The notes under the pieces are model-generated. The model was not told where the DNA came from. It was given only the letters and a program-made list of their open reading frames with translations, and did no database searches. Both the position numbers and the translations under genes were made by a program. From the IMG/VR virus record IMGVR_UViG_3300020154_000003, positions 302,039 through 366,038 of that record: DNA of 64,000 nucleotides. One strand, 5' to 3'. Of the stretch, positions 3,442 to 24,100 are shown one piece after another. The stretch's first letter is position 1. Every line of letters begins with the position of its first letter.

Positions 3442-4224
3442 TTAAAAATCCAAACTAAATTGGACTGTTCTAAATATTGTTGAATCCTTCGCAATAGGGT
3501 TGTTTAACTTACCCACAGCAACAAGATTATTATTATCGTCAAACACACCCACTTCACTGATTTGTACGGGGCTTGTGCTATCCCAAGTTGGGTTTGTTGT
3601 TGAATTATATTGATTCAAAGGCAATACAATTGAAATATCTGTTGTGTAAGCAATCGCTTGAATTTCACTCCTAACATTACCAAAGAAGAAAGCTTCTTCT
3701 CCAAATGCTAATTTATTTGTATCGCCACTCAGGGCACTTGGATAATTTAAATAATCTAACGTATAGGTCTCAGCATCATTGATCTCTTGAACGCCAATAG
3801 TTACTATGGTAGCAGAATTAAATGCAGCCTTAGGTATAGTTGTGCCTGAAAAAGATTCATAACCATCTAATTGATTGGTCAAATCAAGAATTTTCCATCC
3901 ATCCACATCAGGAGTGACCGTTGATCCAGTACCATCTACAATTTGAGCAACGCCAAAGAATTTAGTAGCTGACCAACCTTCACCCGTTTGTCCTGAAGCA
4001 ATGTCTAAGGTATTTTTCATAAATGGGAAGAGAGACCCATCAGGAACAATAATGCTCAACGTCTTATTCACCAAAGAATTCGTTTCCAATTTCTCAATGT
4101 AATTACAATGAATACTAGGCGAATAACCATAAGATTTTCCTAATTCATATGCATTGGCAGTACCGCCAGTAACTGAGTTATCTCCTAGTAAGTATGTAAA
4201 AAATATTGTTTTACCTAAACTCAT
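3442..4224 (-). CDS. Tail/baseplate structural protein
   Basis: C-terminal ISEVGVFDDNNNLVAVGKL motif typical of tail-collar/baseplate proteins; structural-gene context. Confidence 0.6.
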   Translation of the reverse strand: MSLGKTIFFTYLLGDNSVTGGTANAYELGKSYGYSPSIHCNYIEKLETNSLVNKTLSIIVPDGSLFPFMKNTLDIASGQTGEGWSATKFFGVAQIVDGTGSTVTPDVDGWKILDLTNQLDGYESFSGTTIPKAAFNSATIVTIGVQEINDAETYTLDYLNYPSALSGDTNKLAFGEEAFFFGNVRSEIQAIAYTTDISIVLPLNQYNSTTNPTWDSTSPVQISEVGVFDDNNNLVAVGKLNNPIAKDSTIFRTVQFSLDF

Positions 4225-4226
4225 AA

Positions 4227-5813
4227 TTATGAATTATTTACAAATGTAACTGAACCATCAGTCAAGGTTATTTCTACCGTATCAGTTAACGTATTGTTAG
4301 GTGCTGGTACAAAATTATCAGTAACAACAATTGTGTATGTTCCAGTACCCAAATTACTGAAGACATTTGATGCTTGACTAACGCCACCATTAATCGAATA
4401 AACTGGTTCAACAGCATTGCTAACGAATACAGTGATTTTACCATCGCTGACGCTAGATGATGTTGGATTGTTAATAACAAATGACATGTTAAACATATTG
4501 TTAACTGGCTCACAAGCAGATAAGTTGAAGCCAATCGTGGCTCTAGGTAGTGTCCAGTTTCTATTCGATTTATATGTCATGGCGAATAACAATTCCTGAT
4601 CTTCGATAACAAAAATCTTAAGATCATTGAAAACTTTCCCAACTACGTTTCCAAATCTGTCAACCAGATCATGATACGTTGCAGTCAATCCGCTCAACAC
4701 TTTTGGTGTGCTGTCACAACTCAACTTCAAACCAATAGTCCCACCAGTTTCATAATGCCACATGATTGTTGGTAGTTCCAGCACCGGAGTATCTTCAAAA
4801 AGTCCTTCACCATAATGATTTGATGGAGATGCATTGGTGAAATGGATAATACCAATTTTTTTTATCTCCGGGGTTAAACGTTCTATGTAACGAACAAACC
4901 CACCAAAGCTTTTAGTATAATATTGTGAATAATTTCTATCTGTCGATGCAACACCTGCAACTTCCTCAGTAAAAACAATCGCCATATTCCAAACTGGAAC
5001 ATCTCTAACTGGACATATACAGTTCTCCAAAAATGCAATCACACTTTCTTCAATGAAATCAGTTACATATGGTGCGCTATAATATGTTTGAATTGAATCA
5101 CCGCTAATTTCTCTATTGTTATTGTTTGGATACAAAAATGCTCCTGCAGCTATCGATCCTCCTTCACCATTGAAGTTAGGAAGTGGTTTATCAACAGTCA
5201 CAACTAAATTATCTGTGCTCAAAGCACCTGAAATCTTGTTTTCTATTTTATACCAAATATAAGGTACAGCCTCACTCACTGTCGGACTGACAGTTCCACC
5301 GCTTATCAATGGATTTGACCATTTTACAAGTAAATAATCACCAATTACAGGTTCTGTAATATTTGCCAAATAAGTTGGTGATTTTCTGATGGTTAACGTG
5401 GTTCCACCTGCTACTGTTGCAATGTTTATCTGCATGTCAGCCTGTTTCATTGTGAATGAATCGGTCAACAGCGTTGCGGATGTGCCAGTTATTGAGAAGA
5501 ATCCACGTTCAGTAGCACTATTTGTTAAAATATTAGTGTTCGAAACAACGGTAGGTAGTGCAGTATATATTGTTTCCTCATCATCGCTATTCTGTAGAAT
5601 ATGCGAAATAAAAGTCGGATTATTGTCCTTTGGCCTGAGAATATTGGCCATAAACGCATCAAAACTGATGTCATTATTAAACCCATAGTCAATCTCACTA
5701 TCACCAACAGCCCACTTAGTCATGGTCAATTTACCTTGTGAAAGTAATTGTCTACCAACATTCGTTAATTTAATGTTAATTACCGTAGGGTTATTTTTTA
5801 GTATGAAAGACAT
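4227..5813 (-). CDS. Tail/baseplate structural protein with C-terminal Ig-like domain
   Basis: N-terminal KLTNVGRQLL...VGDSEIDY; C-terminal YSINGG...GTYTIVVTD beta-sandwich pattern. Confidence 0.55.
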   Translation of the reverse strand: MSFILKNNPTVINIKLTNVGRQLLSQGKLTMTKWAVGDSEIDYGFNNDISFDAFMANILRPKDNNPTFISHILQNSDDEETIYTALPTVVSNTNILTNSATERGFFSITGTSATLLTDSFTMKQADMQINIATVAGGTTLTIRKSPTYLANITEPVIGDYLLVKWSNPLISGGTVSPTVSEAVPYIWYKIENKISGALSTDNLVVTVDKPLPNFNGEGGSIAAGAFLYPNNNNREISGDSIQTYYSAPYVTDFIEESVIAFLENCICPVRDVPVWNMAIVFTEEVAGVASTDRNYSQYYTKSFGGFVRYIERLTPEIKKIGIIHFTNASPSNHYGEGLFEDTPVLELPTIMWHYETGGTIGLKLSCDSTPKVLSGLTATYHDLVDRFGNVVGKVFNDLKIFVIEDQELLFAMTYKSNRNWTLPRATIGFNLSACEPVNNMFNMSFVINNPTSSSVSDGKITVFVSNAVEPVYSINGGVSQASNVFSNLGTGTYTIVVTDNFVPAPNNTLTDTVEITLTDGSVTFVNNS

Positions 5814-5832
5814 ATATTTTTTAAATAAATAC

Positions 5833-6774
5833 TTACTCCTTTAATTTTAACGCTGCGGCTGTTTCACATATTTCATTGACATAGAAGCTTGAGCAGTACA
5901 TGTTACTTACATACGACAAATCTTCATCGAATGGCGATTTTGCAATGAAATCACCTTTATAAAACATATGTGATCTATCATTTTCGGTAACACCTGCATT
6001 ATGATAGATATTATTACTTTCTAGTTCAGATACTGGCGAAGTTGCCCAACAAAACGACAATTCATCAATTATTTCCGTATCCAGACCCATCAACCAAATA
6101 TTCCACAACAATGCCCACATATCAGCAGTCCACGATTGTATTGGTGATTGAACTGCGTTCTTCTCAGAGGTTACCAACATTGTTTTATATAAAATGTTAC
6201 AATCTCGTTCCACTTTATTCCAGAAATCGTATGATAAATTAAAATTTGAAGTAAATAAGTACTGAGCACCACCGGACATTTCTTGGTTGTTGATTACATG
6301 TGTTGGATTGATTCCCACTACTCGACACATTTTTTCTAATAACCCTAAACCCTTTTCTCTAATATATGCTGCACCGATATACGACCTAGTATCGGACACG
6401 TATATTTTTCTTTTGTCAATATAATCTTTCAAGTTTGGTATTTTTGTAAATATTACATCGCAGTCCATATATAAAACTGCTTTATTTTGTAATATGTCTG
6501 CGTATTCTCCAGTATATAATTGTTTAATTATATGAGGTCTAAGACTAGGTAAATATAATCTTTGAGACAAGTCCCTCGTATCTGGGAGAAAAATTACTCT
6601 AGCATCAGTAGTTTCTTTAAACTCAATTGCTTTTTCATTTATCCCAATTTTAGGATTATAACCAAATAGTATAATAGTTTTATCTTCAATTCCAAATTTT
6701 TTGAAATTGTGCATTTGAACTTGTAGTTGCCAAACGTAGTAATCTGTATCTGGTTGAGCAGTTAAAAACTTCAT
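5833..6774 (-). CDS. GT-A glycosyltransferase resembling protein O-glycosyltransferases (HPAT GT95 / SERGT GT96)
   Basis: DxD motif YMDCDVIF; N-terminal YYVWQxxxxMHNFKK and C-terminal WTADMWA recall plant HPAT/SERGT motifs. Confidence 0.65.
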   Translation of the reverse strand: MKFLTAQPDTDYYVWQLQVQMHNFKKFGIEDKTIILFGYNPKIGINEKAIEFKETTDARVIFLPDTRDLSQRLYLPSLRPHIIKQLYTGEYADILQNKAVLYMDCDVIFTKIPNLKDYIDKRKIYVSDTRSYIGAAYIREKGLGLLEKMCRVVGINPTHVINNQEMSGGAQYLFTSNFNLSYDFWNKVERDCNILYKTMLVTSEKNAVQSPIQSWTADMWALLWNIWLMGLDTEIIDELSFCWATSPVSELESNNIYHNAGVTENDRSHMFYKGDFIAKSPFDEDLSYVSNMYCSSFYVNEICETAAALKLKE

Positions 6775-6788
6775 ATTCTATTGATTAA

Positions 6789-8201
6789 TTATACTGTAAG
6801 AGGCAGCTTAGAAGAAGACACACCAATACTTCCAGATAAAGTATCAAGTGATGCGTGATCCGAAATATTCCATGTAATTCCTCCATTATTAGAGTATAAA
6901 TACGATTTATTTAGAACTGTAGCACCAACAAATATTAACATACCTATGTGAGAGTCATCAGGGCTTTCAATTTGTGAGAATGAACTTCCAGCGGTGCCTG
7001 CTCCCAATATATCTTCAATAGGTTGTGTTATTGTCCAAGTTGCCCCATTATCAGTAGACCTACAAATATTTAATTTTGATGAACTTCCAATAGGTTTAGC
7101 TTGCAATACTAAAGTACCATCAGAAAGTACTACCAATCCAGTATAGTTCATACCTGCTGGCGATGTAGCTAACGTAGTCCATGTCAATCCACCATCGGTA
7201 GTATTAATTAAAACATCTGAAGTAGAACTACCGCCATTTGTTCTAATCATCCAACCAAATCCACTAGTATTTATTGAAAGTGAAGAGAAAGTCGATGATG
7301 GACTACCTAGACCAGTTGTCAAACTACCAGTAATATTTGTCCAAGTTACACCACCATTAACAGTTTTAATTAAACAAGACGTGAAAGGGCCGGGGTAATG
7401 ATACAAACCATATCCTATAGAAGCATTTGCGAAATGCCATTCTTGAACAGCCATAAGAAGACCCGGAAAAGTTACTACACTCCAACTATCCCCACCATTA
7501 GTTGATCGGTAGATATTATTACTCACCGTAGGGCCAGCCATCAATAAATTTTCTGTTACTGCGTATACGCTAATAATATTACTAACACCTGCAGGTTTAT
7601 TAGTCCAAGTAGTACCACCATCAGTAGTTTTCATAAACCCATCATACGTACTATTAATAACGTAACCAGTTAAATTACGGAATGATCCCCGATATGCTGA
7701 TGTAGTCATACCCGGAATTGTAATTTCGCTCCAATTAGCACCTCCATCAGCAGTTTTTAACATTTTTCCTCCAATTGTAGGCGAACCAAATCCTAACCAG
7801 TAATAAACTGGTGGTGGTAAGGTTGTTGTGGTCGTAGTGGTTGTCGTTGTTGTGGTCGTAGTTGTAGTTGTGGTGGTTGTTGGTGGTAAAATAATTGGAC
7901 ATGCAGTATAATCAATACCAACCGATTGAGTTTTTAATGTAGCTATTTGACCACTAGTGATGTCTGTAACCAATTCTAAAAATTCATCTCTTCTTGCATA
8001 GTATTCAGCATCAGTCATTAAACTAACATCACTTTCATTTATTGCTGGATATATATTAGTACTACCAGTAAACGCATTTTTCATATCAAATGAAAAATAT
8101 GTTGCGCCAGTAGTCGTTACTCCATACCAATCAGTGACACCAGTGATAACACTTTTTATCAGTACCGACCTTCTATATTCACCGTTTTGTATTATACTCA
8201 T
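6789..8201 (-). CDS. Virion protein with poly-Thr linker and 7-repeat Asp-box beta-propeller
   Basis: PP-T20-LPPP followed by seven (S/T)x(D/N)GGxxW-type repeats. Confidence 0.75.
   Translation of the reverse strand: MSIIQNGEYRRSVLIKSVITGVTDWYGVTTTGATYFSFDMKNAFTGSTNIYPAINESDVSLMTDAEYYARRDEFLELVTDITSGQIATLKTQSVGIDYTACPIILPPTTTTTTTTTTTTTTTTTTTTLPPPVYYWLGFGSPTIGGKMLKTADGGANWSEITIPGMTTSAYRGSFRNLTGYVINSTYDGFMKTTDGGTTWTNKPAGVSNIISVYAVTENLLMAGPTVSNNIYRSTNGGDSWSVVTFPGLLMAVQEWHFANASIGYGLYHYPGPFTSCLIKTVNGGVTWTNITGSLTTGLGSPSSTFSSLSINTSGFGWMIRTNGGSSTSDVLINTTDGGLTWTTLATSPAGMNYTGLVVLSDGTLVLQAKPIGSSSKLNICRSTDNGATWTITQPIEDILGAGTAGSSFSQIESPDDSHIGMLIFVGATVLNKSYLYSNNGGITWNISDHASLDTLSGSIGVSSSKLPLTV
7821..7880 (-). 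repeat. 20 consecutive Thr codons
   Basis: Plus strand is 20 NGT triplets = mixed ACC/ACA/ACG/ACT codons. Confidence 0.95.
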
Positions 8202-8202
8202 A

Positions 8203-11200
8203 TTATGATGTTATTGGGGTTCTCTCCCCTGAAAAGTTAATAAATAATTGTCCTGTTGGTTGATCGATAAATGTCCATGTCGTACCACCATCAGTAGTTC
8301 TAAAATATCCGTTATTGGACGTGCTCGGATCAATAATTAAATGACCAGATGCAACACCAATATTTTCATCAATGAAATAAAGTGCTGAATATGCACGACC
8401 AAGAGTATTAACTGCAGTCCACGTAGTACCACCATCTGTTGATCTAAGTATTTTTGCATCGTTTCCAGTATAACTCATTATCACGAAAACAATATTATCA
8501 TCAATAGCCCATACTTGATTAACACCAAATCCATCAGCAGGTAGATTAGCACTAATATCAGTCCACGTATCGCCACCATCAATTGATTTGTATAATACGT
8601 TATCTGTACTCGTGCTATGTGTAAAGTATGCAACATTATTAGATGGTGCGAACGAAAGAGCCTTAGGTTGGCCAACAGGAGTCGCCAATATTTTAGTCCA
8701 TGTTGTACCACCATTTGTGGTTTTATAAACGCCTTGATAACCACTATTAAACCCGTGATACCCTATTGCGTAACCAATATTTAAATCTTTAAAGTGTATA
8801 CCATTTACAGCCTGACTAACTGCCCCAATAACTAACTCAGATCGAGACCAAGTTACACCGCCATCTGTTGATTTTAAAAATCCGTTAGCCCCAACAGCAC
8901 ATAACACATTACTATTTAATGCTAACACAGCCTTAATACCACCACCATTATATCCTGCAGAATTTAATGCAGGTCTTCTACTAGTCCATGTAGCACCTCC
9001 ATCATTTGTTGTAATTATGTGAGGGAATGTTGCGTTTGAAGTAGATATGGTTGCACCCATAATACCAACTTGCCCAACAAAACTAACATGACTATATCCA
9101 ACACTATCAATTGTGGTTTGTGTGTTGACTGAAGTGAAGTTAAGTCCACTATCAATTGATCTATATGCTGATTCGTTAGTTGTGTACCCAAAATAATCTG
9201 CTGCCCAAAATGATGGTATAGAACCAGCAGGTATTGTTATGGCTTCATTAACTGAGAACGGTAAAGGAGCGTCAATTATAGCACCGCTATCTGATGCTGT
9301 TATGGTGTTAATGTTAAGTGTTAGTGAAGTAGATGCGTCATCACTACTATTAGGACTGTGTGCGCTCATAGTTATCTGAATTGTCAGAGAATCGCTGCTT
9401 AACATAGTGAAGGATGATGAATTGTTTTCAGTACCATCAGTCACTTCGTTCGAATATATCACACTGCCATTCTTTATAATTTCCACTAAATTGCTTGCAT
9501 CACTATCACCTTCTACCGTTGCAATTTGCCCCAAATCAAACCCTAACGTAAATATTGTTCCGTTAGATAAACTTGGGGTTATAGCAATTTCATATTCTAA
9601 GAATATGTCTGCATTACGATTTCCAGTAGTTGCACCGGAAGAGTATACTCTTTCAATTTCAGTCATAAAGAATTCATATTCATTAATAACATATTCTTGT
9701 TGAACACAAATAATATCATCCCACGCAAATGAAAATGTAGTATCCTGTACTCTTCTAACAAATTCACTACCGTCATTACCTAAATGGTTTAATGACTGGT
9801 CAAAACTAACTCCCCTTCTATATGGAAATTTTTGCTTAGTAAATGCTGTGTTTCTAACCAGTACACCACCTTTCTTTAGAATTATTGTGGCACTTAATAA
9901 TTGATCTATGAATCTATGGAAAAAGCTATTGAACTTATTGATAAATGGATAAACGTTAGTAAACGTATATCCATTACTACGTACTGTTGGATGATTGCTT
10001 CGCTTTAAATATTCTTCATACAACTTCTGAACTGTTGGATATAACCCACCTTCATGATCTGTCAGAGTTTTTCTATTTTTAACGTTAATTAATCGTCTAT
10101 TAATAAGTTCAAGGTATTCCAAGAAACTAATCTCGGACAAGTTAGGAAACTCAAAGTCGCCAAAATTAATACCAGTATCAGTACTACCATCAGCAGTAAT
10201 GTAGAAGACATTTATTAAATATCCTATGTTCAAAGCACTAGTATTGAATAAAATTTGTTTCCTATTGGATGAATTCAAAGTAAAATCTTTACCATTTTGA
10301 AGGGTAAGACCATTAATCACAACTTTAATAGCATCCACGTTAGGTGGCTCATAGTCCATAACATAGATGTATTTGTTGATACCACTATTGTAGAAAAATT
10401 TAGAGGTTGAAAAACTATCAATTCTATGACTTTCAGATTTTTTAAGTATCGGATCATTACCAGACGATTTGATGTAACTGATAACCACAACAGGATTTGC
10501 AATCAGGTAATTTTTCAAATCATTATTAACCACAATAATTTCACCAGAATTGATCACATAATCACCAGTATATAGCGAGTTACCTTTGGTTAATGTCATT
10601 CCATTTACCACTAATTGTACCTCACCCAATGGGTCTTCCAATAATGGGATAGACAATCCATCAGGATTGGCAGTAATTTTTGTAACCACGTAATCTACTT
10701 GATTATAAGTACCACCAGTAGATTTGTCGTTGAGATATGTTAATGTAATAACGTCTTTATGTCCATTCGTATAACTTTGTGCAGTCCCTCCTATCAAGAT
10801 AGCCTCTTTACTATCTAAAGGATTTATGTAATAATCAGCACTAGGATCAGTTGATCCTGAACCCTTGGTTAAAGTAAGACCATTAAAACTAACCTGTATA
10901 TCACCTTGAGGAACTTCTGGAATAGTAAATGAAGATGCAGAGGCACCATAAGTGAATGGTATATTAATGTAAAGATAAGGTTTAGTTACACCGCTAGTTG
11001 TAATTGGAAAATTGTGTTCAAGGTTGTAATTCCAAACATCAAATTCAATACCTCTTGAAATATCAAGAGTTATGTCAACTTCTTTAGTATTCAACACTAA
11101 ATTACTATCATTTTGATAATAGTTTGGTGTCGTGTAATGTCTTCTTTCAGTAGTACCTGATTGTACCCACGACTTTTTGTTGTCAACTTTTCTATTCAAT

Positions 11201-12819
11201 CTAAAACCAACATCTCTGAATACATCCATGTATTGTTGTCCAGAATCGGTACTACCGCTTACTTGGAAATAAAATGTTTTCGTTTCCTTAGGTGCTATTG
11301 GGTAACCTTCAGAATTGTATGGTAATGAAGCTGAAGGTAAATCAGCAAGACTAACAGTTACTGTGTTAGGATTAATTTTCTCATCTACAGTATAGATGTA
11401 TTCAGTTATATTAATAAATGGCTCAGGTATACCGACCATTAATAACATTGTTTTTATTGCATCCCTAGTACCTTTGGCTTTGAAAAGATAGTTGGTATTT
11501 AACAAAATTCTTCTCCACAACTCAACGTCTACCTCAGGCGGTAACAAATCATTTACACTTCTTTGCTCAGTTGAAAAGAAGCTATTCAATAAATCATCAT
11601 CATTCACCAAAGTGACTGCATCCCAACCCATCGTTTTAGCTAAGTTCTTAACCAATAGATCAGGAATGTTCTTTTTCTTATTATAGGATAATTTATTGAT
11701 TGTAACTAAAGCATCAATGAATAATTTCACATTGTCGAAACTACGACCATAAATTCTCAATAATTTAGACATTTTTTGAGATTCAGTATTGTCGCCTTCG
11801 ATCAATGACTCTGGAACCAACATTCTAATCAATAGATCAGACTTAAATTGATCATACAGAGTTCCAATTGCACCTAATTCACTCAAGAACACATCGTAGT
11901 TATAACCATCGATGTCTACGTTATATCCATCTGATGCGCTCCATATTATTTCTTGATCGCTATATGTAACGCCACCGTCTTCAAGTTGAATTGGTGATTG
12001 AAATTCGGTACGGTATCCTTTTGCAATTTTTTCATTCAATAAATATGATTCTAATCTTGAAAGATTCGATTTAAATTTATTGAAGTGAAGTGGTTTGGGT
12101 TTCAAATGATATTTGAATTTTCCTGCAGTAGTTCCACCAGAGGATAACTCAGGGAAAGGATCGCCTTTAACGACCACACTTATATACTGCTTACTCGTAG
12201 AAAAGCCAGTAAAACCTAAAATTTCTAAAGTATTTTCATCAGGTGTATCTTCCCTCCAAATTAAATATTCGTTATATGAAATATTTAAATTACGTAACGC
12301 TTGATCTTGGGGTAATTGATTATTTGTACTGTTAATTACTAATCCAAACTTATTGACTAACGTATTGAATGGAATGATAAATGACGAAACATCTAATGAA
12401 GGATCATACACATAATCAACCACACTATTAGAATTTGTGAATGTTGAAATTTGTGAAGTAACACGAATACTGGCAGGAAATTCAAGAATGATATTTTCAA
12501 CTGAAACTCTTAATATTTCTCTAAGTGAGCCAAATCTAGCATACGAAGTTAAGTCAGTTTTGTCAAAATTTAGGGCAACTTCTTGGGTACTATTATATAT
12601 TACTTCTGATTCATCGTCAGTAATATTTAATGACTCTAACGTGATGGGCTTAACGAAGGAACTTAAGGTGTTCGAGTAATTTCTTACATTTCTTACACCA
12701 AAATTCGTATCTACTGTGAATCTTCCGAAAGTGAATACTGTTTCAGATGTTATATTTCTGAAACTTGCACCAACCAAATCAGAACCAAGACGCTTATTTC
12801 TAACTTTTACCTTTGCCAA
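8203..12819 (-). CDS. Large baseplate wedge-like protein with C-terminal Asp-box propeller
   Basis: 1538 aa, TTG start; KGTRDAI motif of baseplate proteins; three V.(F/V/I)NG(L/M)TL repeats; seven C-terminal Asp-box repeats. Confidence 0.65.
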   Translation of the reverse strand: MAKVKVRNKRLGSDLVGASFRNITSETVFTFGRFTVDTNFGVRNVRNYSNTLSSFVKPITLESLNITDDESEVIYNSTQEVALNFDKTDLTSYARFGSLREILRVSVENIILEFPASIRVTSQISTFTNSNSVVDYVYDPSLDVSSFIIPFNTLVNKFGLVINSTNNQLPQDQALRNLNISYNEYLIWREDTPDENTLEILGFTGFSTSKQYISVVVKGDPFPELSSGGTTAGKFKYHLKPKPLHFNKFKSNLSRLESYLLNEKIAKGYRTEFQSPIQLEDGGVTYSDQEIIWSASDGYNVDIDGYNYDVFLSELGAIGTLYDQFKSDLLIRMLVPESLIEGDNTESQKMSKLLRIYGRSFDNVKLFIDALVTINKLSYNKKKNIPDLLVKNLAKTMGWDAVTLVNDDDLLNSFFSTEQRSVNDLLPPEVDVELWRRILLNTNYLFKAKGTRDAIKTMLLMVGIPEPFINITEYIYTVDEKINPNTVTVSLADLPSASLPYNSEGYPIAPKETKTFYFQVSGSTDSGQQYMDVFRDVGFRLNRKVDNKKSWVQSGTTERRHYTTPNYYQNDSNLVLNTKEVDITLDISRGIEFDVWNYNLEHNFPITTSGVTKPYLYINIPFTYGASASSFTIPEVPQGDIQVSFNGLTLTKGSGSTDPSADYYINPLDSKEAILIGGTAQSYTNGHKDVITLTYLNDKSTGGTYNQVDYVVTKITANPDGLSIPLLEDPLGEVQLVVNGMTLTKGNSLYTGDYVINSGEIIVVNNDLKNYLIANPVVVISYIKSSGNDPILKKSESHRIDSFSTSKFFYNSGINKYIYVMDYEPPNVDAIKVVINGLTLQNGKDFTLNSSNRKQILFNTSALNIGYLINVFYITADGSTDTGINFGDFEFPNLSEISFLEYLELINRRLINVKNRKTLTDHEGGLYPTVQKLYEEYLKRSNHPTVRSNGYTFTNVYPFINKFNSFFHRFIDQLLSATIILKKGGVLVRNTAFTKQKFPYRRGVSFDQSLNHLGNDGSEFVRRVQDTTFSFAWDDIICVQQEYVINEYEFFMTEIERVYSSGATTGNRNADIFLEYEIAITPSLSNGTIFTLGFDLGQIATVEGDSDASNLVEIIKNGSVIYSNEVTDGTENNSSSFTMLSSDSLTIQITMSAHSPNSSDDASTSLTLNINTITASDSGAIIDAPLPFSVNEAITIPAGSIPSFWAADYFGYTTNESAYRSIDSGLNFTSVNTQTTIDSVGYSHVSFVGQVGIMGATISTSNATFPHIITTNDGGATWTSRRPALNSAGYNGGGIKAVLALNSNVLCAVGANGFLKSTDGGVTWSRSELVIGAVSQAVNGIHFKDLNIGYAIGYHGFNSGYQGVYKTTNGGTTWTKILATPVGQPKALSFAPSNNVAYFTHSTSTDNVLYKSIDGGDTWTDISANLPADGFGVNQVWAIDDNIVFVIMSYTGNDAKILRSTDGGTTWTAVNTLGRAYSALYFIDENIGVASGHLIIDPSTSNNGYFRTTDGGTTWTFIDQPTGQLFINFSGERTPITS

Positions 12820-12861: not shown

Positions 12862-13770
12862 TTAGCTGCCACTTAAATCTTCTAGTACATTATCAAAAGT
12901 TTGTGAATTGTCAATATTGGTTCGTTTTTGCTTCACTTCAAACAGTGAATCGTTGGTCACATCGTCCTTAATTTCAAATAGATCAAATTGCTTAACGATT
13001 TCTCTATCCTTATTAAATTGAGTTAGTATACCATTATCCACGTCCATTATCTGCTCACCAGCGACCACATCCATGATTGAATCGATAGTATTTTCAACTA
13101 ATTCAACCTCAATTACTTCAGGCTTAAAGTTGGTGTTTGAGATCAATATGGTCTGATTGGGCTTTCCAATGAATGGATTCACGTTAGGTTTAACATTTGA
13201 GGCACTACTTGGTGTAACCTGTAAAAACAAGAGATTACCAGCGTCATCGAATCTGTATCTTACTGCCGTTTGACTAGTATTGCCAATATTTTCTGTAACA
13301 GGGATGGCCTTATTTGACGTTGTGACGTATCTTACTGTATTTCTTATCTTAGTGCCATCGCTTTCGATATATTCAATTTTATAGCCCTGTAATGCGTTAT
13401 TTGAAACTAGATTTGACGGTAGATCACTAGAATTCAATACAATGCCTTTTATCGCTGGTAATGATGAAAGTACACCACAATCCTGAATATCAATGCGTAT
13501 TACTTTGGGTCTAATATATACCGTGTATATCCCAACCTGATTAAAAATGGTTGATGGCAATTTCAAATTGTAAAGCCCTTCCAAAAGATTTTCCTCACCA
13601 CTTTCCTGCTCATCTGTCGGAATTTTAACTTCTGAAATAACGTCAGACGCATTCAACCTTAAAAACGTAGTTGCTGCAGTGTCCCTATTAGGGGCAAATG
13701 AGTAGTATACATCTAAATCATCAATATCTACATCAGCAGGTCTAACCGTACCATAAATTCCCGTTGCCAT
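12862..13770 (-). CDS. Putative baseplate structural protein
   Basis: 302-aa beta-rich ORF between baseplate genes. Confidence 0.5.
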   Translation of the reverse strand: MATGIYGTVRPADVDIDDLDVYYSFAPNRDTAATTFLRLNASDVISEVKIPTDEQESGEENLLEGLYNLKLPSTIFNQVGIYTVYIRPKVIRIDIQDCGVLSSLPAIKGIVLNSSDLPSNLVSNNALQGYKIEYIESDGTKIRNTVRYVTTSNKAIPVTENIGNTSQTAVRYRFDDAGNLLFLQVTPSSASNVKPNVNPFIGKPNQTILISNTNFKPEVIEVELVENTIDSIMDVVAGEQIMDVDNGILTQFNKDREIVKQFDLFEIKDDVTNDSLFEVKQKRTNIDNSQTFDNVLEDLSGS

Positions 13771-13772
13771 TT

Positions 13773-14375
13773 TTACGTATTTTCATATATTGTAAAATAA
13801 TTACCACCCGCATATAAACTTACTTGATTAAGGTTGCCTATAGCCCTCAACCTTACTGAATTTTCAAATACAGGTAATTCTTGTCTAATAATAAATACGT
13901 CACTATCAATAAGTGGATTCTCAGCCATGTTCTGTTTGGCTTCAATCTTTAATATCGGTCTATTCTCAAAATTTACTGTAGACAATCCAGTACTTGTGAA
14001 GGTAAAGGTGGTCGCAGTCGTACTAGTCGTTTCAATATTGGTGTATGTTATGCCTCCGATGTAATAAATCAACGTTTTAGTTGAACCAGTAGTCGTTGAA
14101 GCACCTACATTCAATCCGTCCGTTGATGGGCTGGTTGAAGTTCTGTATCGAATCGAGTAGTCTGGATTGGAATTGTATTTTCTTAACTCAGGCAACCTAT
14201 TTGAGGAAGTTCCTGTGACTGTATATGAGCCGCTATAACCCGACAGGGAAGTAGAACCGCTATAGTATTCGCCTTCATAGGTGTCAAAAAAACCGTAGTC
14301 CAGACTATTGGATGTCAGGAGAACGTTCATATGGTATGAACTTCCAGAAACAAAGGGGAACGACTTTTTTATCAT
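13773..14375 (-). CDS. Ser/Thr-rich putative structural protein
   Basis: 200-aa ORF in the baseplate operon. Confidence 0.5.
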   Translation of the reverse strand: MIKKSFPFVSGSSYHMNVLLTSNSLDYGFFDTYEGEYYSGSTSLSGYSGSYTVTGTSSNRLPELRKYNSNPDYSIRYRTSTSPSTDGLNVGASTTTGSTKTLIYYIGGITYTNIETTSTTATTFTFTSTGLSTVNFENRPILKIEAKQNMAENPLIDSDVFIIRQELPVFENSVRLRAIGNLNQVSLYAGGNYFTIYENT

Positions 14376-14378
14376 GGA

Positions 14379-16235
14379 TTATACGAATAAATCAGTTTTT
14401 TTACGCAAAGTCAACTTAATATCCCTCTCAGGAAATTTGATTTCAAACATAGAATCTTCTACCGAATAAACTGTGTTATTAACCAACCTAATCTCTCTTG
14501 TAGTTGAATCAGCATACTCTTGTTCTATTTGATTTAGCGAATAACCATTTCCGACCTTATTATAGGCTGTTACACTTATGATGTTCAATACACCGTTAAT
14601 GTCATTAATTTGGTTTTGAAGATCACCTAAGAAAATATCCTCATTCATTTTCTTATCACTAACCGAGAAGTATGAGGCAACCGTTCTAATCACATTATTC
14701 GCTAACTCAGACTGATTAATAGAATCTGATATGTAAAGTTCTAAATCAAAAGCAAGGTTAAATATTTTTCCATCTCTAATTTCAACATAGTCATTGACCA
14801 TTCTATAACCACTCAAATATTCAGCAATATTTTCCTTCAATAGACTATTACTAGTATTATTCAATTTTCCATCACTACCTAATCCAAGAATCGATATTAC
14901 TACCTTATTATTTTCCTTGAATGCATTTGCTCTGAATGGTGAACCATAACGTCCGGGCATTTTAAACACCTGTAAAAGGTAATCATTAATGGTTACGTCT
15001 CTGTTCTGAGCACTGAAATTGTATCTTATAAGATTTCTGATCTGATTGATCGATAATCCATCGTTACCACCAATGGCAGGTATAGGGTTGGTTACACTTA
15101 AACTTCTTCTAACTTGGATATTAAAGTCTTGTCTAGGGCCATTTACTACTAAATTAACATTACCCAATGCATTTAACACACTAGCACCAACATTAGAATT
15201 AGCACCACCACCAGTACGATATTTTACAAATAGTGTGTAGTCTTTTTTTAGTTTTTCACCCAAAGATGTGTTCGATAAATAATTATCTAAAAACATCTGA
15301 TTGGTTATTCCAGCCTTCGCAAATCCATCTAAAAACAAATCACGTTCTCCGTTTCCACCACCAAAAATCAATTTACAAAATCCATTAGAAGTAAATTCTT
15401 TAATGAATTTGCGTTTAACATCAATCCACTTTGCAGCTTTCATGTAACTATTACCACTCGTAGCTGAATTTGACCCACTATTAGGATCATCAACAAAGAC
15501 ACGCTGTTGCGCCAAGTAATCAACTTCAAAATATCTATTATCAACATCAAGGAATTCTTCATCAGGAGGATTGCCAGAATAATTAGTACCAGCCAAAGCA
15601 ATCACACTAACAATTTCTATTACATCACTATCAGGCAAAAACAACTCATAAAACGGAACTGTTTCAGCATCTCGAATAACCTTCTTATAAATGTTTGTCG
15701 CACCATTAACAACAACCTCACGCTTTGTGATTGAATACCCTTGAATGATACCATTTCCATCAAATAGTGGTAATTCAGTCTTATTAGGATCACCTAAGTT
15801 ACTGTAGGGAGAAGCCCAATCAATATTGTCAGATGTTTCGAAAATCTTACCACCGCCCACTACTTGAGCACCTGCAGCCAGTACTGGCAAGTATGCTTCA
15901 TTAGGTCTATCACCTTTCGCAGGTACTTGGACTGTGAAGTCAACAACAGTAACTGACGATCTTTTACCCGGAATGTTAAAACCTAAGTTTTTTGCAATAT
16001 TTAGTATGGATTCGCTCTGTTGAGCATTATCCAATTGAGTTTCTTGAAACGCTCTGTCAGTGTTGACAGACAAATTATTGGCAACACCAGCATTGAGATC
16101 GATTAATAATGAACCAACGTTAGAGTCTGTGAAATCCTGAAACGTATCTGGATACATTTCCCTGATCATGCCAATCAACTCATCATGAATCTCACTAAAT
16201 GTTCTCTTATTATATGATACTTTATTATCTGCCAT
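14379..16235 (-). CDS. Baseplate wedge protein, T4 gp6 / baseplate J-like
   Basis: N-terminal YNKRTFSEI...FQDF..SNVGSLLIDL; GGA.SNV and QNRDVTINDY motifs. Confidence 0.85.
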   Translation of the reverse strand: MADNKVSYNKRTFSEIHDELIGMIREMYPDTFQDFTDSNVGSLLIDLNAGVANNLSVNTDRAFQETQLDNAQQSESILNIAKNLGFNIPGKRSSVTVVDFTVQVPAKGDRPNEAYLPVLAAGAQVVGGGKIFETSDNIDWASPYSNLGDPNKTELPLFDGNGIIQGYSITKREVVVNGATNIYKKVIRDAETVPFYELFLPDSDVIEIVSVIALAGTNYSGNPPDEEFLDVDNRYFEVDYLAQQRVFVDDPNSGSNSATSGNSYMKAAKWIDVKRKFIKEFTSNGFCKLIFGGGNGERDLFLDGFAKAGITNQMFLDNYLSNTSLGEKLKKDYTLFVKYRTGGGANSNVGASVLNALGNVNLVVNGPRQDFNIQVRRSLSVTNPIPAIGGNDGLSINQIRNLIRYNFSAQNRDVTINDYLLQVFKMPGRYGSPFRANAFKENNKVVISILGLGSDGKLNNTSNSLLKENIAEYLSGYRMVNDYVEIRDGKIFNLAFDLELYISDSINQSELANNVIRTVASYFSVSDKKMNEDIFLGDLQNQINDINGVLNIISVTAYNKVGNGYSLNQIEQEYADSTTREIRLVNNTVYSVEDSMFEIKFPERDIKLTLRKKTDLFV

Positions 16236-16246
16236 GTTTAATGTGT

Positions 16247-16645
16247 TTAAAATGTTAAGTCAATACTGCCTGAGGATGAAAATGCATCATCGGTATATGT
16301 AAAAAATATTCTTACGCTAATTTCAGTTTCATTCAAATCCTCATATCCAGAATCAGTATTTGTGAAGAAAGAAACACCATTTATAGTAATGGATGGCATA
16401 TATCGTCTAACGGCCTCCTTTAAATCTTGAACTATTTCATCTTCCGTAATGTCATCCTTTGGTTGGAAAAGGTGTTTTTCAAGGTTGGTGCCATAATCAG
16501 GCATGTAATACCTCTGTCTTCGCTTAGTTTTGAATAAAAGTGTCAAATCAGATACTAAAGCATCCTTAGTCACCGAATTCATCTTGAAAAGATTGTTTTT
16601 CTCAGTATCGTCTTCTAAAGGGAATTTAATATTGATTGATTTCAT
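16247..16645 (-). CDS. Baseplate wedge subunit, T4 gp25-like
   Basis: IKFP...SDLTLLFKTKRRQRYYMPDYGTNL..LF; start moved to ATG at 16645 because the intergenic motif lies at 16660. Confidence 0.85.
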   Translation of the reverse strand: MKSINIKFPLEDDTEKNNLFKMNSVTKDALVSDLTLLFKTKRRQRYYMPDYGTNLEKHLFQPKDDITEDEIVQDLKEAVRRYMPSITINGVSFFTNTDSGYEDLNETEISVRIFFTYTDDAFSSSGSIDLTF

Positions 16646-16673
16646 GTATTTACTTTTCAATAAATACATTTGA

Positions 16674-18478: not shown

Positions 18479-19882
18479 TTATGATGGTACTGTAACGTTT
18501 ACAATTGACTTATAAAATTGCGCACGAGTTTCAGTAACATTTTTAAGGTTATATTTAACTTTAAAATCTTCATATAATTGATTCCCCAAGTCTTCTCTCA
18601 AATTAGGTTCAGTTGCTAGAAGCTTGATAGCTTTAGCCCAATCTCTATCGATTTTTCTATTGTATAAACTATTTTTAGTATATGGAATCAATATACAGTT
18701 CTTCATATGTACACCATCCACGTTATATGGGGGTATATCACTACAAATAATTGGAATTTTGCGTGTCCAGACTTCAACCTGCTTCAAATTTGATTTCATT
18801 CTGTTAAACATATTGTCAGCCAAAGGAGCGAGAGCAACATCCGTTTCATTCAATACTTGAGCGTAAGTATTTGCTTTCTGTGTCCATCTTCGAACATAAT
18901 TTACATTAGACTCATCATAATAATTATCTCTTTCAAATTTTTCCAACCATTTTATATAGTCTTCATTTCTAATCAACTTATGTTCGTCAGTAAAAATTTT
19001 TTCATAGTCCAAATAAACAGATTCTACTGAATGGATAGCCCTACGACTAACATCAAATACTTTTCCTCTGAAACGATCTTTAATGTCTGAGGGAAGTCCT
19101 TTAATCAAATCAACGTTACCATCGCATTTTTTTATTGACTTATACATTTCTTTGGTTAGAAGTCTTCTTTTTTGAAGTACATCAGCAAACTCAGGGTTAA
19201 ACTTAATGTCTGTAGTTACACCTTCGGTGTCCCATCCAGCGACAATGTATTTAACCTTATTCTTTAGTTTAACATCATTGTCAACAAGCTTAGTAACCCC
19301 AATCAATTGTTGAACGTCATTCTTGTGAGAAGAACCAGCCATGTATGTGTATCTAACATACTTTTCATCAGTGATTCTATTATCTTGAAATTGCTTCATC
19401 CATTCAGGATTAACTGAGTTAGGTAGAACAATCACATTATCCTTACGAGTAATTTTTCTAATTTCAGTGGCAAACAATTCAGTCGTAGTGGTAACATAAT
19501 CTGCCAACTTAAGATTGTCAATTATGTCGAGATGCATCTTATTTTTAAATGCAGTAGGATACATTGGGTGAGTCTTGTCGAGCAACCAATAGTCATCAAT
19601 ATCCATGATGAGAATTGTACCGTTCGCTCTAAGTTCCTGAACAAGCTTAATCATACCATTGACTGAAGGTACAATCGTTCTGTGGAAGTGAATTATTTGA
19701 AATGTCTTAAGGTAAGCTAATGCACCTTCAAAATCATTCAAATTAATGTCAGAGTTTATTTCAATTTGAAAGTCAGATGAGTGATCTCTTTCAAGCTGCA
19801 TCGCAGGGGTCAATGTTCTGTAATAATTTACACCCGCAACATCTTTGTTATAGAATAGAATTTTAATTTTCTCGCTCTCCAT
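18479..19882 (-). CDS. GT-B (GT4-like) glycosyltransferase
   Basis: GVNYYR, MDIDDYW, DYVTTTT, DVALAPL..N.FN.MKSNLK.VE...IPIICSDIPPY. Confidence 0.8.
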   Translation of the reverse strand: MESEKIKILFYNKDVAGVNYYRTLTPAMQLERDHSSDFQIEINSDINLNDFEGALAYLKTFQIIHFHRTIVPSVNGMIKLVQELRANGTILIMDIDDYWLLDKTHPMYPTAFKNKMHLDIIDNLKLADYVTTTTELFATEIRKITRKDNVIVLPNSVNPEWMKQFQDNRITDEKYVRYTYMAGSSHKNDVQQLIGVTKLVDNDVKLKNKVKYIVAGWDTEGVTTDIKFNPEFADVLQKRRLLTKEMYKSIKKCDGNVDLIKGLPSDIKDRFRGKVFDVSRRAIHSVESVYLDYEKIFTDEHKLIRNEDYIKWLEKFERDNYYDESNVNYVRRWTQKANTYAQVLNETDVALAPLADNMFNRMKSNLKQVEVWTRKIPIICSDIPPYNVDGVHMKNCILIPYTKNSLYNRKIDRDWAKAIKLLATEPNLREDLGNQLYEDFKVKYNLKNVTETRAQFYKSIVNVTVPS

Positions 19883-21175: not shown

Positions 21176-24100
21176 TTATTGAGGCTCCTGAGGAACTATT
21201 TGTCTCAATAAAATTTCCTTATTGTTTCTTTGCTTACCAGAATAAATATCGAAAAGAAGTTTCTTCAGAATTTCACCGATCTGCTGACCACTATAACCCA
21301 AGGCCAATAAATCATTTCCATTAACTTGCAGTTCTCGCAACGAGAACGGCATACCCATAGACCTCATCTCCTTGATACTGTCTTTTATCTTATCAGGAAT
21401 TATTTGGGAGTTGATCGCATCGGGATAAATCTTATACATGTTGAAGACGGTGATTTTGTTTTTAACTGCACTATCCGAATCGTCTTTAAATGCAAGTTCC
21501 AATGCTCTCATCTCATTGTATGTTGTAAGGTCACCTTTCAAGCTGTTCTTATAAAACTCAGCAGGGTTAGGTATGCCGTACTTTGTCAATTGGTAAATAA
21601 ATTCACCCATAGTTTTAACGTTGTTGAATTCAGCAACGTTGATCTCAGTGTCAACACTAAATATCTGTTCATACAAACCAGTTTCTTTCAATAATTGAGC
21701 ACCAACTGTTGGCTTACCTTTCTTCACAATCTTATCGAATTCAATCAATATTCTCTCAGGAGAAATTTCTCTTATTTTAAAGGCATTTTGTTGGATTGCC
21801 TTTAATGTTTGAGGTTCTATTTTGAAATCAAATCTGGATGCAAATTGAACAGCACGTAGCATTCTCAAAGGGTCTTCCGAAAAGGCTTTCGGATTAACCA
21901 TTCTGATGAGTTTATCTTTTATGTCCTGACTTCCACCGTATGGGTCAATCATTTGTCCATGAGAATCCTTAGCGATTGCATTTATGGTGAAATCCCTTCG
22001 TTCTAAGTCTTTTTCAATGGGTAACGTGTGATCTGACGTAACTTCAAATCCCTGATACCCACCCTGACCCGTGGCCCTTTCGGTTCTTGGTACTGCAATA
22101 TCCAACTCCCCTGTTTGAGGGGTCGTAAATTTGATGATTCCAAACGATTTACCGACATTATCCACGCGACCGTACTTGGCTAAGATTTTCTCAATATCTT
22201 CCAATGGAACGCCTGTAATGAGCAAATCCAAGTCTTTAGATGGTTTGTTCAACATCCCATCACGAACAGCACCACCCACGGAGTAGATTTTACCGCCTGC
22301 GAGTTCAATATCGTTTTTGAAGGGTAGCATGTCTAAATTTGCAATATTTTCGTTGATTTTGCCCTTTTTTGGCTTTAAAACGGTTTTTTTCTTGTCTTTC
22401 GTTGAAAAAACTAGCTTTTCAGACTGCAATTTAATGTTTTTCTTGAACTTCTTACCATATTTCTTACCAGTACCCTTTTTAACATAAGAAATAGTCATGT
22501 GAGGATGATAATCCTTAAATCTATTGGTGTAAGGGAGTTCTTTTAACGCCTTATTTAAGTTTTTCAAGGTTTGAGTAGGGACAACATCAAATTTAACTAC
22601 GTCAAAGTCAGGAGTTTCGAAGTGAGACACCTCTTTTAACTCTATTTCGATGGGTTTTGAGATGTCGATGATGCTTTCCACAATAGCCCTTACCTGATTC
22701 GCGTCAACTCCATCATGGAAGCCATAAAGAATGGTTATATGCGGGTCTTTTTCAATACCAAAGGTTGGTTTGTCATAAATATCGTCTTTTTCGATCATGG
22801 ACGTAATTTCATCCCAATTCGAAACCTTTATTTCTAACATCAACACACCGAATTCTACCTTCTCCTTTCTTTCGGCTTCGGCAAGCATTTCCTTAATTAA
22901 GGGTTCTGCCATGTCCTGTACCTCACCGTCTTGATCCATAAACTCGTCCCAATATCCGCTCATGTCTTGTATTTCAACCATCTCAGGCTGAAATTTAACA
23001 TCAGGTATTTTCTTCCACGTATATCCACCACCAGTTTCATAGTTATATGGCGAAATATCAACATGCATCAATATTCTGTTAGCTGTATCATAAACATATA
23101 TCGAAGTGTGACATTCGTATTCACTGTATCTTGTAAAACACCCATAATCACTATTACTAGTGACTACATCACACATTTTATCTGCAATATCATCGCATAT
23201 ACCACCAGAACCATACATTTCATCATATCCTTCATGATCTTGTTCCCATTCATTATATACTTCCTGAGCAACTGTAGCAAATTGTGTCTTCAAGGATTCC
23301 AATTTAGACTTCAATGCTAAAACAGGAGAATTTTCATTCAGAGATTCATACATCTCATCTGTATCGTCAACTATTTTAATTGATGATGGTTCGAATACAA
23401 TATAGTTGGTTGCATCAGGATTGGTTTTATCACTCATCATATTCCCCACGTATCCAGCTTTACTTAGAAACATTGATGCTGCTTTATTACTACCTAGCAC
23501 GGCAGCTAACCATTCATATACTTGTTTATTTGTGATGTCATAACGATATGATTCATCGTAAAAGTCACTTTGAAACTGTTCAATATCAATATCACTCAAA
23601 CCTAAATTTCTGCCGCGACCAAGTATGTATGAAGCTAAATGATCATCGATGGTTTCATCAAAATTCAAATACCTTCCGTCTCTCAATTGAACGTTCAATA
23701 TCTTATCACCATAGATGGATGCCACTTGAGGGTCATTAGTGAAGTAAAAACCCCATCCTCCCAATTCTCTACCGTCTGATGAACCTATTTTTTTTAATGA
23801 GAAAGCATTAAATTTACTTTTACTGGAAGTACCGTGGTAAGCATCGATTTCACTTACTCTACTTAATTCTTCCTTAATTGTTTGTGTTACTATCGCATTG
23901 ATGTCGCCTTGGTTGCAGGGAGTACTGGTGCCATCACCATTACCGTTTATTTGACACTTCTTCTTGATACCAACAGCTTTCGCATCAGGCATGTACGTCA
24001 TTACTCTTTCAAGAATAGCATTTTCAAGCTTGAGCAATTCAACCTGATCCATCTCTTTATGTGCTGAATATCCAAGATCATAATATGCAAGTACACCCTT

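Follow-up and report, generated by a model that had tools for sequence, protein, structure and literature searches.

A family of GT-A-fold proteins encoded beside oligo-threonine tracts of phage structural proteins: a candidate system for particle O-glycosylation

To our knowledge, experimental demonstrations of glycosylated phage particles are confined to some actinobacteriophages, in which the modification affects recognition by antibodies. In other systems, Thr/Pro-rich tracts that are densely O-glycosylated form extended, protease-resistant stalks. Mucin-type O-glycosylation is performed by GT27 enzymes in animals and by the GT60 polypeptide alpha-GlcNAc transferase in Dictyostelium and trypanosomes, and the serine-rich repeat adhesins of Gram-positive bacteria are O-glycosylated in the cytoplasm by GtfA/GtfB together with GT8-type extenders. 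The closest functional precedent among phages is provided by the mycobacteriophages, in which phage glycosyltransferases are reported to decorate particle proteins, with glycans at the C-termini of capsid and tail-tube subunits (Freeman et al., 2023, as cited in PMC12619734 and PMC13313380). Here, we analyze a stretch of 64,000 nucleotides from the IMG/VR virus record IMGVR_UViG_3300020154_000003 (positions 302,039 to 366,038 of that record), hereafter called the window, in which a gene for a 313-aa protein with a predicted glycosyltransferase fold of the GT-A type follows a gene for a 470-aa protein carrying an uninterrupted run of 20 threonines. We consider it probable that the enzyme glycosylates the Thr tract of this neighboring particle protein.

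Both open reading frames (ORFs) are located on the minus strand where a preliminary description of the window had placed them, the ORF for the 470-aa protein (6789..8201) lying 15 bp upstream of the start of that for the 313-aa protein (5833..6774). All sequence motifs quoted in that description are present in the 313-aa protein, i.e., DCD at residues 104-106, YYVWQ at 12, MHNFKK at 21 and WTADMWA at 215. The protein matched phrog_4417 with an E-value of 1.3e-63, residues 1-304 aligning with profile positions 1-290 of 293. This family is annotated as "unknown function" and is represented by neither a Pfam nor an NCBIfam model; the 313-aa protein itself did not match any entry of these two collections. 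A profile search of 1.84 billion representative proteins indicated a family of 1,028 clusters at 50% identity, 599 of them at E ≤1e-30. At least 520 loci with the enzyme family were found in a viral contig collection, and the gene is present in 77 deposited phage genomes, in each of which it is annotated as hypothetical.

An AlphaFold2 model of the 313-aa protein, built with 35 homologs, consists of one compact domain (pLDDT 95.7, pTM 0.92). Its first beta-strand starts at residue 2, which leaves the protein without a signal peptide or membrane anchor. A Foldseek search against the PDB yielded 98 matches at E ≤0.001, and all of the 50 that were listed are GT-A enzymes. The best folds were those of the UGGT catalytic domain (GT24), glycogenin, LgtC and the xyloside xylosyltransferase XXYLT1 (all GT8), and WbbM, with E-values of 3e-7 to 2e-5, TM scores of about 0.5 and identities of 8-13%; CmsA was also among the matches. 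On the basis of this model a GT-A fold can be predicted with confidence, in agreement with the earlier designation of the gene. The DxD motif (D104-C-D106; 6457..6465, minus strand) follows a beta-strand formed by residues 100-102 in the model and is presumed to be the metal and nucleotide-sugar site. Its two aspartates are invariant among the 35 homologs as well as among 62 diverse family members, in whose alignment, reaching down to 18% identity, Y74, D104, D106, Y132, G169, Q171, F241, H258, G261, F271 and K273 are invariant. The block H258...G261...F271...K273 (5956..6003, minus strand) is placed like the C-terminal metal/diphosphate-binding motif of GT8-like GT-A enzymes. Taken as a pattern, the DxD motif and the distal His/Lys residues would be those of an active metal-dependent GT-A enzyme, and roles for single conserved residues may be proposed by analogy with GT8. 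The GT8/GT24 retaining enzymes, i.e., glycogenin, LgtC, XXYLT1 and UGGT, share the DxD motif and the C-terminal His...Lys arrangement, and several of them act on proteins. On the other hand, Glyco_transf_8 (PF01501) was matched neither by the window protein nor among the families listed for 97 scans of family members, which, together with the identities of 8-13% and TM scores of about 0.5, argues for a family distinct from GT8/GT24. Family members also occur as fusions: in two viral contigs the enzyme is joined to a radical SAM plus SPASM domain (L050 9974-11986 and L059 915-2933), and further partners are a methyltransferase and second glycosyltransferase domains (GT2, GT6, GT25-like and Glyco_transf_7C).

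The 470-aa protein, the proposed acceptor, comprises a small N-terminal domain (aa 1-94; 7920..8201, minus strand), a linker and a beta-propeller (aa 132-470; 6792..7808, minus strand). The N-terminal domain is conserved in phage homologs, is modeled with low to moderate confidence and probably attaches the protein to the baseplate. Sortilin-Vps10, BNR and PSII_BNR were identified by Pfam in the C-terminal two thirds. In the AlphaFold2 model residues 130-470 are all-beta and residues 95-127 are disordered (pLDDT <50). The disordered segment holds the T20 tract (aa 108-127; 7821..7880, minus strand), flanked by PP and LPPP, which we propose as a cluster of O-glycosylation sites. Foldseek returned the seven-bladed YCF48 as best match of the propeller (E 1e-11), followed by GH74 enzymes and sortilin, and the nearest sequence relatives beyond phage homologs are YCF48-related surface proteins of the type IX secretion system (T9SS) in Bacteroidota and Ignavibacteria. 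The propeller probably serves as a distal ligand-binding head. An attachment domain, a linker of exactly 20 threonines in the context PP-T20-LPPP and a distal propeller thus make up the architecture that had been outlined from the sequence beforehand. The tract is encoded by a mixture of all four ACN codons (8 ACA, 6 ACC, 3 ACT, 3 ACG) and is therefore maintained as protein sequence and not as a slippage repeat of the DNA. An assembly artifact can be dismissed as well, since a T21 run occurs at the same position in independent assemblies from other samples. Among the long minus-strand ORFs of the window, T20 is the sole run of six or more Ser/Thr residues, and it sits in the gene adjoining that of the enzyme.

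In syntenic relatives with enzymes 96, 73, 64 and 57% identical to that of the window, the same position is occupied by T21, T23, a Ser plus T18, and T12STSTT5, respectively. Linker length is 19-23 residues across this range, while the flanks diverge with the exception of a Cys located 6-8 residues upstream and the adjoining Pro. The tract is also kept in homologs of the 470-aa protein at 29-44% identity. The bacterial propeller homolog P0203 lacks both the phage N-terminal domain and the tract (alignment A2). In loci L208 and L210, Thr tracts are additionally present in the counterparts of two further proteins of the window, i.e., around aa 1048-1095 in those of a 1538-aa protein and also in those of a 528-aa protein. 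With regard to tracts in general, 390 distinct runs near enzyme genes showed a Thr to Ser ratio of 5.4 to 1, with Pro at position -1 in 64% and at position +3 in 64%. The consensus around the runs reads P-(T/S)n-[ALIVE]-[APE]-P and is fitted exactly by PP-T20-LPP of the window.

Cysteines near the tracts constitute a separate observation. The arrangement of a Cys 6-8 residues before the Thr run, followed by Pro, is seen in the window (7881-7907) and in L205, L208, L209 and L210. At other viral loci a Cys is common 4-8 residues ahead of tracts, and many tracts of aquatic phages are bracketed by Cys. Some syntenic relatives contain tandem enzyme paralogs plus a radical SAM/SPASM gene; in L210 a separate gene of this kind is part of the fiber operon (13055-14083). 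A second peptide modification near Thr runs, e.g., a thioether link, is possible.

Co-occurrence of the enzyme with poly-Thr proteins across phages had been suggested as a check of the proposed pairing, and this check was run on 81 enzyme loci, comprising 80 viral contigs and Chryseobacterium phage MA9V-3. When a strict definition of a Ser/Thr tract (at least 10 of 12 residues) was applied, 49 of the 81 loci contained an ORF with such a tract; all 49 of these ORFs reside within 3 kb and on the same strand, 35 of them directly upstream. Upstream of the enzyme gene, tract densities in the three 1-kb bins were 0.32-0.62 per kb; the value just downstream was 0.10 per kb, and the remainder of the ±10 kb had 0-0.07 per kb. 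Many loci that were negative by the strict definition encode T6-T9 runs in the upstream ORF. A Thr run of at least six residues in a same-strand neighbor within 1.5 kb was found for 57 of the 81 enzyme genes (70%) vs. seven of 45 control ORFs (16%) of similar size that share the contig with an enzyme gene but lie more than 5 kb from it (odds ratio 12.9, Fisher p 2.7e-9, uncorrected for relatedness). The co-occurrence is position-specific and extends across unrelated carriers. For a reverse sample, 120 viral loci were chosen solely by the DNA pattern (ACN)14, and 98 of them encode a poly-Thr ORF. The enzyme is present at seven of these 98 loci, abutting the poly-Thr ORF at six and about 750 bp downstream of it at one (L148), a frequency well beyond what any plausible base rate would give.

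Phages of Gram-positive bacteria constitute an informative group. In all of the 11 phage groups inspected, the enzyme gene is immediately preceded by a structural gene with a Thr-rich tail, which either forms the end of that gene or is encoded behind it. The tail is found on the tail tube in phiFL1A (gp50), phiCTP1 (gp18), Staphylococcus phage SA2 and Arcanobacterium phage TPWB06, on or just after a capsid protein in PLE3 (gp07), VPE25 and bIL285, on orf13, annotated as "major structural protein," in Lactococcus phage 1706, and on small Ig-like or decoration-type structural proteins in PLE3 (gp08), Iacchus, 521B and LP65. The enzyme gene is positioned between tail-tube and chaperone genes or after the capsid genes. 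In the aquatic phages the Thr tracts are inter-domain linkers. The fold of the carrier varies, but the coupling of tail and enzyme does not. Tail-tube orthologs 50-60% identical to phiFL1A gp50 exist in the enzyme-less phages GBSVK-C and 315.6 (Streptococcus) as well as phiJL-1 and ATCC8014 (Lactobacillus), and all four stop after "...PGExTG(D/E)(Y/F)..." without a Thr tail and are directly followed by the chaperone gene. It therefore appears that tail and enzyme are gained or lost as a unit. The strong positional co-occurrence over unrelated carriers and the absence of the tail from orthologs in enzyme-less phages agree with the earlier suggestion that both proteins form a candidate enzyme-substrate pair.

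In several of these phages the tail, in part or as a whole, resides outside the annotated frame. That of VPE25 (L203 ~5752-5880) is encoded in another frame just past the capsid stop codon, SA2 (L212 4667-4930) and TPWB06 (L214 4720-4926) have long Thr-rich ORFs that overlap, in a different frame, with the final part of the tail-tube gene, and in bIL285 (L292 3447-3485) the capsid frame continues into the tail behind its stop codon. These arrangements are suggestive of programmed frameshifting or readthrough, by which the tail would be placed on only a fraction of the subunits.

Cellular homologs were collected in a scan of one genome per prokaryotic species. The resulting 73 loci stem mostly from Chitinophaga, Pedobacter, Sphingobacterium, Chryseobacterium and Elizabethkingia, and 52 of the 73 encode two-domain proteins of at least 440 aa; library members of that size carry a second GT2, Glyco_transf_7C or GT6 domain. 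An ORF with a C39 peptidase motif is found within 6 kb at 26 of the 52 two-domain loci vs. none of the 81 viral loci, so that the setting of a cluster for peptides that are made on ribosomes and subsequently modified (RiPPs) is absent from the window and the other viral genes as judged from this motif. LanB-N, LanB-C, HlyD and a C39-ABC exporter were identified by Pfam at a Sphingobacterium locus, and GT11, a LanC-like protein and a C39-ABC exporter at a Chitinophaga locus; LanB, LanC and C39-ABC genes are present in L227 and L265. Peptides with a GG leader and a Thr-run core are encoded in L265 (253-498; T13) 5.5 kb upstream of the glycosyltransferase gene and directly upstream of it in L248 (5596-5844) and L281 (5609-5857). 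Small Thr-run peptides without a recognizable GG leader were found in L284 to L286. The combination of leader and C39 has been described for Bacteroidetes (PMC7268733), and the clusters of Bacteroidota found here look like those of glycosylated RiPPs. The cellular context indicates a family that works on ribosomally made peptides. It thereby speaks for peptides as acceptors of the phage enzymes, too, but is not proof of Thr.

The preliminary description had termed the enzyme HPAT/SERGT-like. This label stands as a remote resemblance and not as a classification, for membership in GT95 or GT96 was not established. HPAT (PF23452) is the only recurring Pfam glycosyltransferase family, matched by four of the 35 and three of the 62 family members, in all cases below threshold (best E 0.0038), and the 313-aa protein of the window did not match it at E-values up to 10. 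Nearest named neighbors in a language-model and structure atlas include clusters bearing HPAT and clusters bearing the GT60 "GlcNAc" domain. By structure search these comprise a chlorophyte HPAT+ShK cluster with a TM score of 0.74 by query, viral neighbor clusters with HPAT in 10% of the members and a viral cluster with a GT60 "GlcNAc" Pfam domain (TM 0.75). No solved HPAT structure is among the PDB fold matches. The only recurring remote family signals, HPAT and GT60 "GlcNAc," are those of peptide-hydroxyl transferases. Like the phage enzyme, HPAT (GT95), a hydroxyproline O-arabinosyltransferase of plants and algae, and the related SERGT1 (GT96), a Ser O-galactosyltransferase, are GT-A enzymes; they act on side-chain hydroxyls in Pro-rich extended peptides. 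Unlike HPAT, which has a type II membrane anchor and resides in the Golgi, the phage protein has no N-terminal hydrophobic segment and would act in the cytoplasm, with Thr and not hydroxyproline or Ser as the putative acceptor. Based on the rare and sub-threshold Pfam matches and the missing membrane anchor, the enzyme is not a demonstrable member of GT95/HPAT.

Starting from the fold, the invariance of catalytic-type residues, the architecture of the linker and the position-specific coupling to Thr tracts across lineages, we infer an acceptor, an O-glycosidic linkage, a sugar donor and a benefit to the phage as follows. The enzyme would be made late in infection alongside the baseplate proteins as a soluble, cytoplasmic and metal-dependent protein. 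A nucleotide sugar would be bound at the DxD-metal site, and many hydroxyl groups of the disordered Thr tract would receive the sugar while the baseplate is being assembled or earlier. The acceptor would be the product of the gene immediately upstream and, in general, runs of Thr/Ser, with recognition probably directed at an extended, Pro-bounded Thr run typically set as P-(T/S)n-x-(A/P)-P and not at a folded domain. One would expect a mucin-like stalk that is stiff, extended and resistant to proteases and that, inserted between the attachment domain and the propeller, keeps the latter at a distance from the baseplate; protease shielding, rigidity or masking, as put forward in the preliminary description, may be the benefit. 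In siphophages, each subunit of the capsid or tail tube would correspondingly bear a brush of glycans. A longer glycan may be expected in cases of enzyme duplication or of fusion to additional glycosyltransferase domains.

A number of points weigh against Thr-tract glycosylation by the neighboring enzyme. In the reverse sample, 91 of the 98 poly-Thr ORFs are not accompanied by a phrog_4417 enzyme in the retrieved DNA, so that poly-Thr neither requires this family nor is diagnostic of it; two have a GT2 enzyme instead, and neighbors at the remaining loci are mostly not glycosyltransferases. Some 30% of the viral enzyme loci lack a neighboring Thr run under the criterion applied, several of these having shorter or less pure tracts, and a Thr run is adjacent in only two of 49 two-domain bacterial loci. 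The statistics ignore shared ancestry, and an independent-pairs test of two-domain state vs. tract presence offered about six usable transitions, which is too few. The diversity of carriers and the contrast between orthologs nevertheless argue against simple inheritance of one block. Adjacency amounts to guilt by association, and all of the evidence is comparative. A literature search retrieved no paper on the family, nor a glycan, mass shift or donor reported for one of its members. As for the two GT2 genes, they are located directly downstream of the poly-Thr ORF at loci devoid of phrog_4417 (L130 4240-5067 and L199 11609-12436), and the counterparts are 83% identical; the pairing of poly-Thr proteins with glycosyltransferases may extend to other enzyme families.

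The frequency of Thr-rich linkers without a nearby enzyme in the reverse sample would also be understandable if the enzyme glycosylated particle proteins elsewhere, for instance on the propeller or on other baseplate proteins, and the tract were an unmodified flexible spacer belonging to the same modular fiber genes; the AlphaFold2 model, in which the tract is only disordered, is compatible with that. We regard this as unlikely, because the unrelated carrier folds of the Gram-positive phages (capsid, tail tube, Ig-like) share just the Thr tail beside the enzyme gene and the orthologs in enzyme-less phages lack exactly this tail. The same low probability is given to a non-protein acceptor, be it host wall polysaccharide, teichoic acid, lipopolysaccharide (LPS) or a small molecule, with the late operon providing only the proper timing. 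The fold relatives LgtC (GT8) and WbbM act on LPS or O-antigen, and fusions to GT2, GT6 and GT25-like domains are typical of glycan assembly. However, neither a membrane anchor nor flippase or lipid-carrier genes accompany the enzyme, the bacterial homologs reside in peptide (RiPP) and not in polysaccharide clusters, and a non-protein acceptor gives no reason for the link to Thr tracts or for the gene's precise placement, in unrelated phages, between the genes for tail tube and chaperone or behind those for the capsid, always beside a Thr tail.

That the protein has retained the GT-A fold as a non-catalytic assembly factor or particle component binding Thr tails, in the manner of a chaperone or a lectin-like adaptor, would suit its position next to chaperone genes in siphophages. 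It is very unlikely in view of the DxD, His and Lys residues, which are invariant in 62 members of a family of about 1,000 clusters and follow the pattern of an active enzyme, and in view of the fusions to further glycosyltransferases, methyltransferase and radical SAM enzymes. Since modification of DNA is the classical task of phage glycosyltransferases (PMC12619734), glycosylation of hypermodified bases in phage DNA as a protection against restriction has to be considered, too. The only matches in a PDB sequence search with the enzyme were to TALE repeats (aa 131-175, profile E 1e-9). The segment is the most conserved of the enzyme, and at face value this weak similarity would point to DNA. 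We reject it as an artifact, since the E-value sums 10-20 individually insignificant repeats of repetitive targets at about 1 bit per repeat. Moreover, the family is found inside the head-tail operon of small temperate siphophages, genes for hydroxymethyl-pyrimidine synthesis are not linked to it and modification of DNA leaves the coupling to Thr tracts unexplained, which makes this function scarcely credible. Glycosylation of the Thr tract remains the probable function of the enzyme.

With regard to its setting, the enzyme belongs to a myovirus-type baseplate/fiber module that is defined by gp6-like and gp25-like genes, as the preliminary description had it when assigning the pair to a tail/baseplate operon. 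The window has a G+C content of about 35%, and all ORFs taken as genes are on the minus strand, as are all window features given below. The module runs in the order gp25-like wedge gene (16247..16669), gp6-like wedge gene (14379..16235), two small ORFs, the gene for the 1538-aa baseplate/fiber protein (8203..12819), those for the 470-aa and 313-aa proteins, and those for the 528-aa and 260-aa proteins (3442..5813). The matches of the wedge genes (14379..16669) were phrog_219 (E 2e-26), phrog_261/43 and Pfam GPW_gp25 (E 7.5e-10). The 528-aa and 260-aa proteins, encoded downstream in the operon of the enzyme and syntenic in L205, L208 and L210, did not match any Pfam or PHROGs family and are probably fiber components. 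The 1538-aa protein ends in a BNR propeller (BNR_2 and PSII_BNR at aa 1268-1473) paralogous to that of the 470-aa protein, so that two adjoining module proteins have paralogous BNR/YCF48-like propellers (6792-7808 and 8203-9100). The T9SS relatives of the propellers and the best phage match, Chryseobacterium phage MA9V-3, point to a host among the Bacteroidota, from which a gene may have been captured. When 25 kb of the window were compared with phage genomes by Megablast, zero matches resulted. Two further genes deserve mention. A 467-aa protein encoded upstream of the baseplate genes (18479-19882) matched phrog_7162, "glycosyltransferase," with its C-terminal third (E 3e-38); the label is not supported by Pfam, NCBIfam or PDB sequence searches, and the protein was not counted as part of the system. 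A 1405-aa protein (21176-25393), in which an RNA ligase-like region (aa 881-1002) is followed by one of the tRNA nucleotidyltransferase type (aa 1034-1264), may be a large fusion for tRNA repair.

Among the described systems, that of the mycobacteriophages shares with the window operon and with the Gram-positive phages a glycosyltransferase gene within or next to structural genes, and the C-terminal glycan site reported for it corresponds to the position of the Thr tail in the Gram-positive members. The differences concern the hosts, which here belong to the Bacillota and Bacteroidota and not to the Actinomycetota, and the acceptor signature, here an oligo-Thr stretch flanked by Pro that in the window forms an internal linker of a baseplate protein instead of a C-terminal tail. 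The enzyme on our side belongs to the unannotated family phrog_4417. The serine-rich repeat adhesins resemble the proposed system in that soluble enzymes act on a long, disordered, Ser/Thr-rich stalk presenting a binding domain. They differ by a GT-B (GT4) initiating enzyme and by being cellular adhesins exported by accessory Sec, not particle proteins. A link to glycocins and glycosylated lanthipeptides is given by the cellular homologs beside LanB, LanC, C39-ABC and precursors with GG leaders. In contrast, the glycocin enzymes known so far (SunS type) belong to GT2. The bacterial proteins of the present family are fusions of two domains; those of phages have a single domain and act, as proposed, on large structural proteins. 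The mucin-type enzymes are eukaryotic and secretory, and their relation to the phage family is confined to a GT60 structural neighbor (TM 0.75), with no relationship shown at the sequence level. Our literature search did not retrieve a paper in which glycosylation of phage particles is connected with the phrog_4417 family, with HPAT-like enzymes or with poly-Thr tails. Relative to known particle glycosylation, the enzyme family, the acceptor signature and the far wider host range are new.

On balance, we lean slightly toward the wider interpretation that phrog_4417 is a widespread oligo-threonine O-glycosylation cassette, consisting of an enzyme and a portable Thr-rich tag, that has been moved among capsid, tail-tube, decoration and fiber proteins by phages of Bacillota and Bacteroidota and by jumbo phages, and that bacteria use the same for ribosomal peptides. 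As far as can be told from sequence comparison, mucin-like coats of sugar on the particles may thus be a trait of many phages. If true, particle glycosylation would be common among phages and not a peculiarity of actinophages, and it would include phages of genera used in therapy (VPE25-like phages of Enterococcus, Sextaecvirus of Staphylococcus) as well as dairy phages. A large family of "unknown" phage proteins would gain a function, glycosylated particle proteins would become predictable from sequence alone and the occurrence of Thr-rich tails and linkers on proteins of the capsid, tail tube and fibers would be explained. Consequences would concern the stability of phages, their immunogenicity and their pharmacokinetics in therapy, the way they adhere to mucus and hosts, and how mass-spectrometry and cryo-EM data of these proteins are interpreted. 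The hypothesis is directly testable in cultured, well-studied phages, and the enzyme and its tag represent a candidate pair for the production of defined O-glycosylated proteins in bacteria. Finally, modification of phage particles would be linked to the tailoring of bacterial RiPPs.

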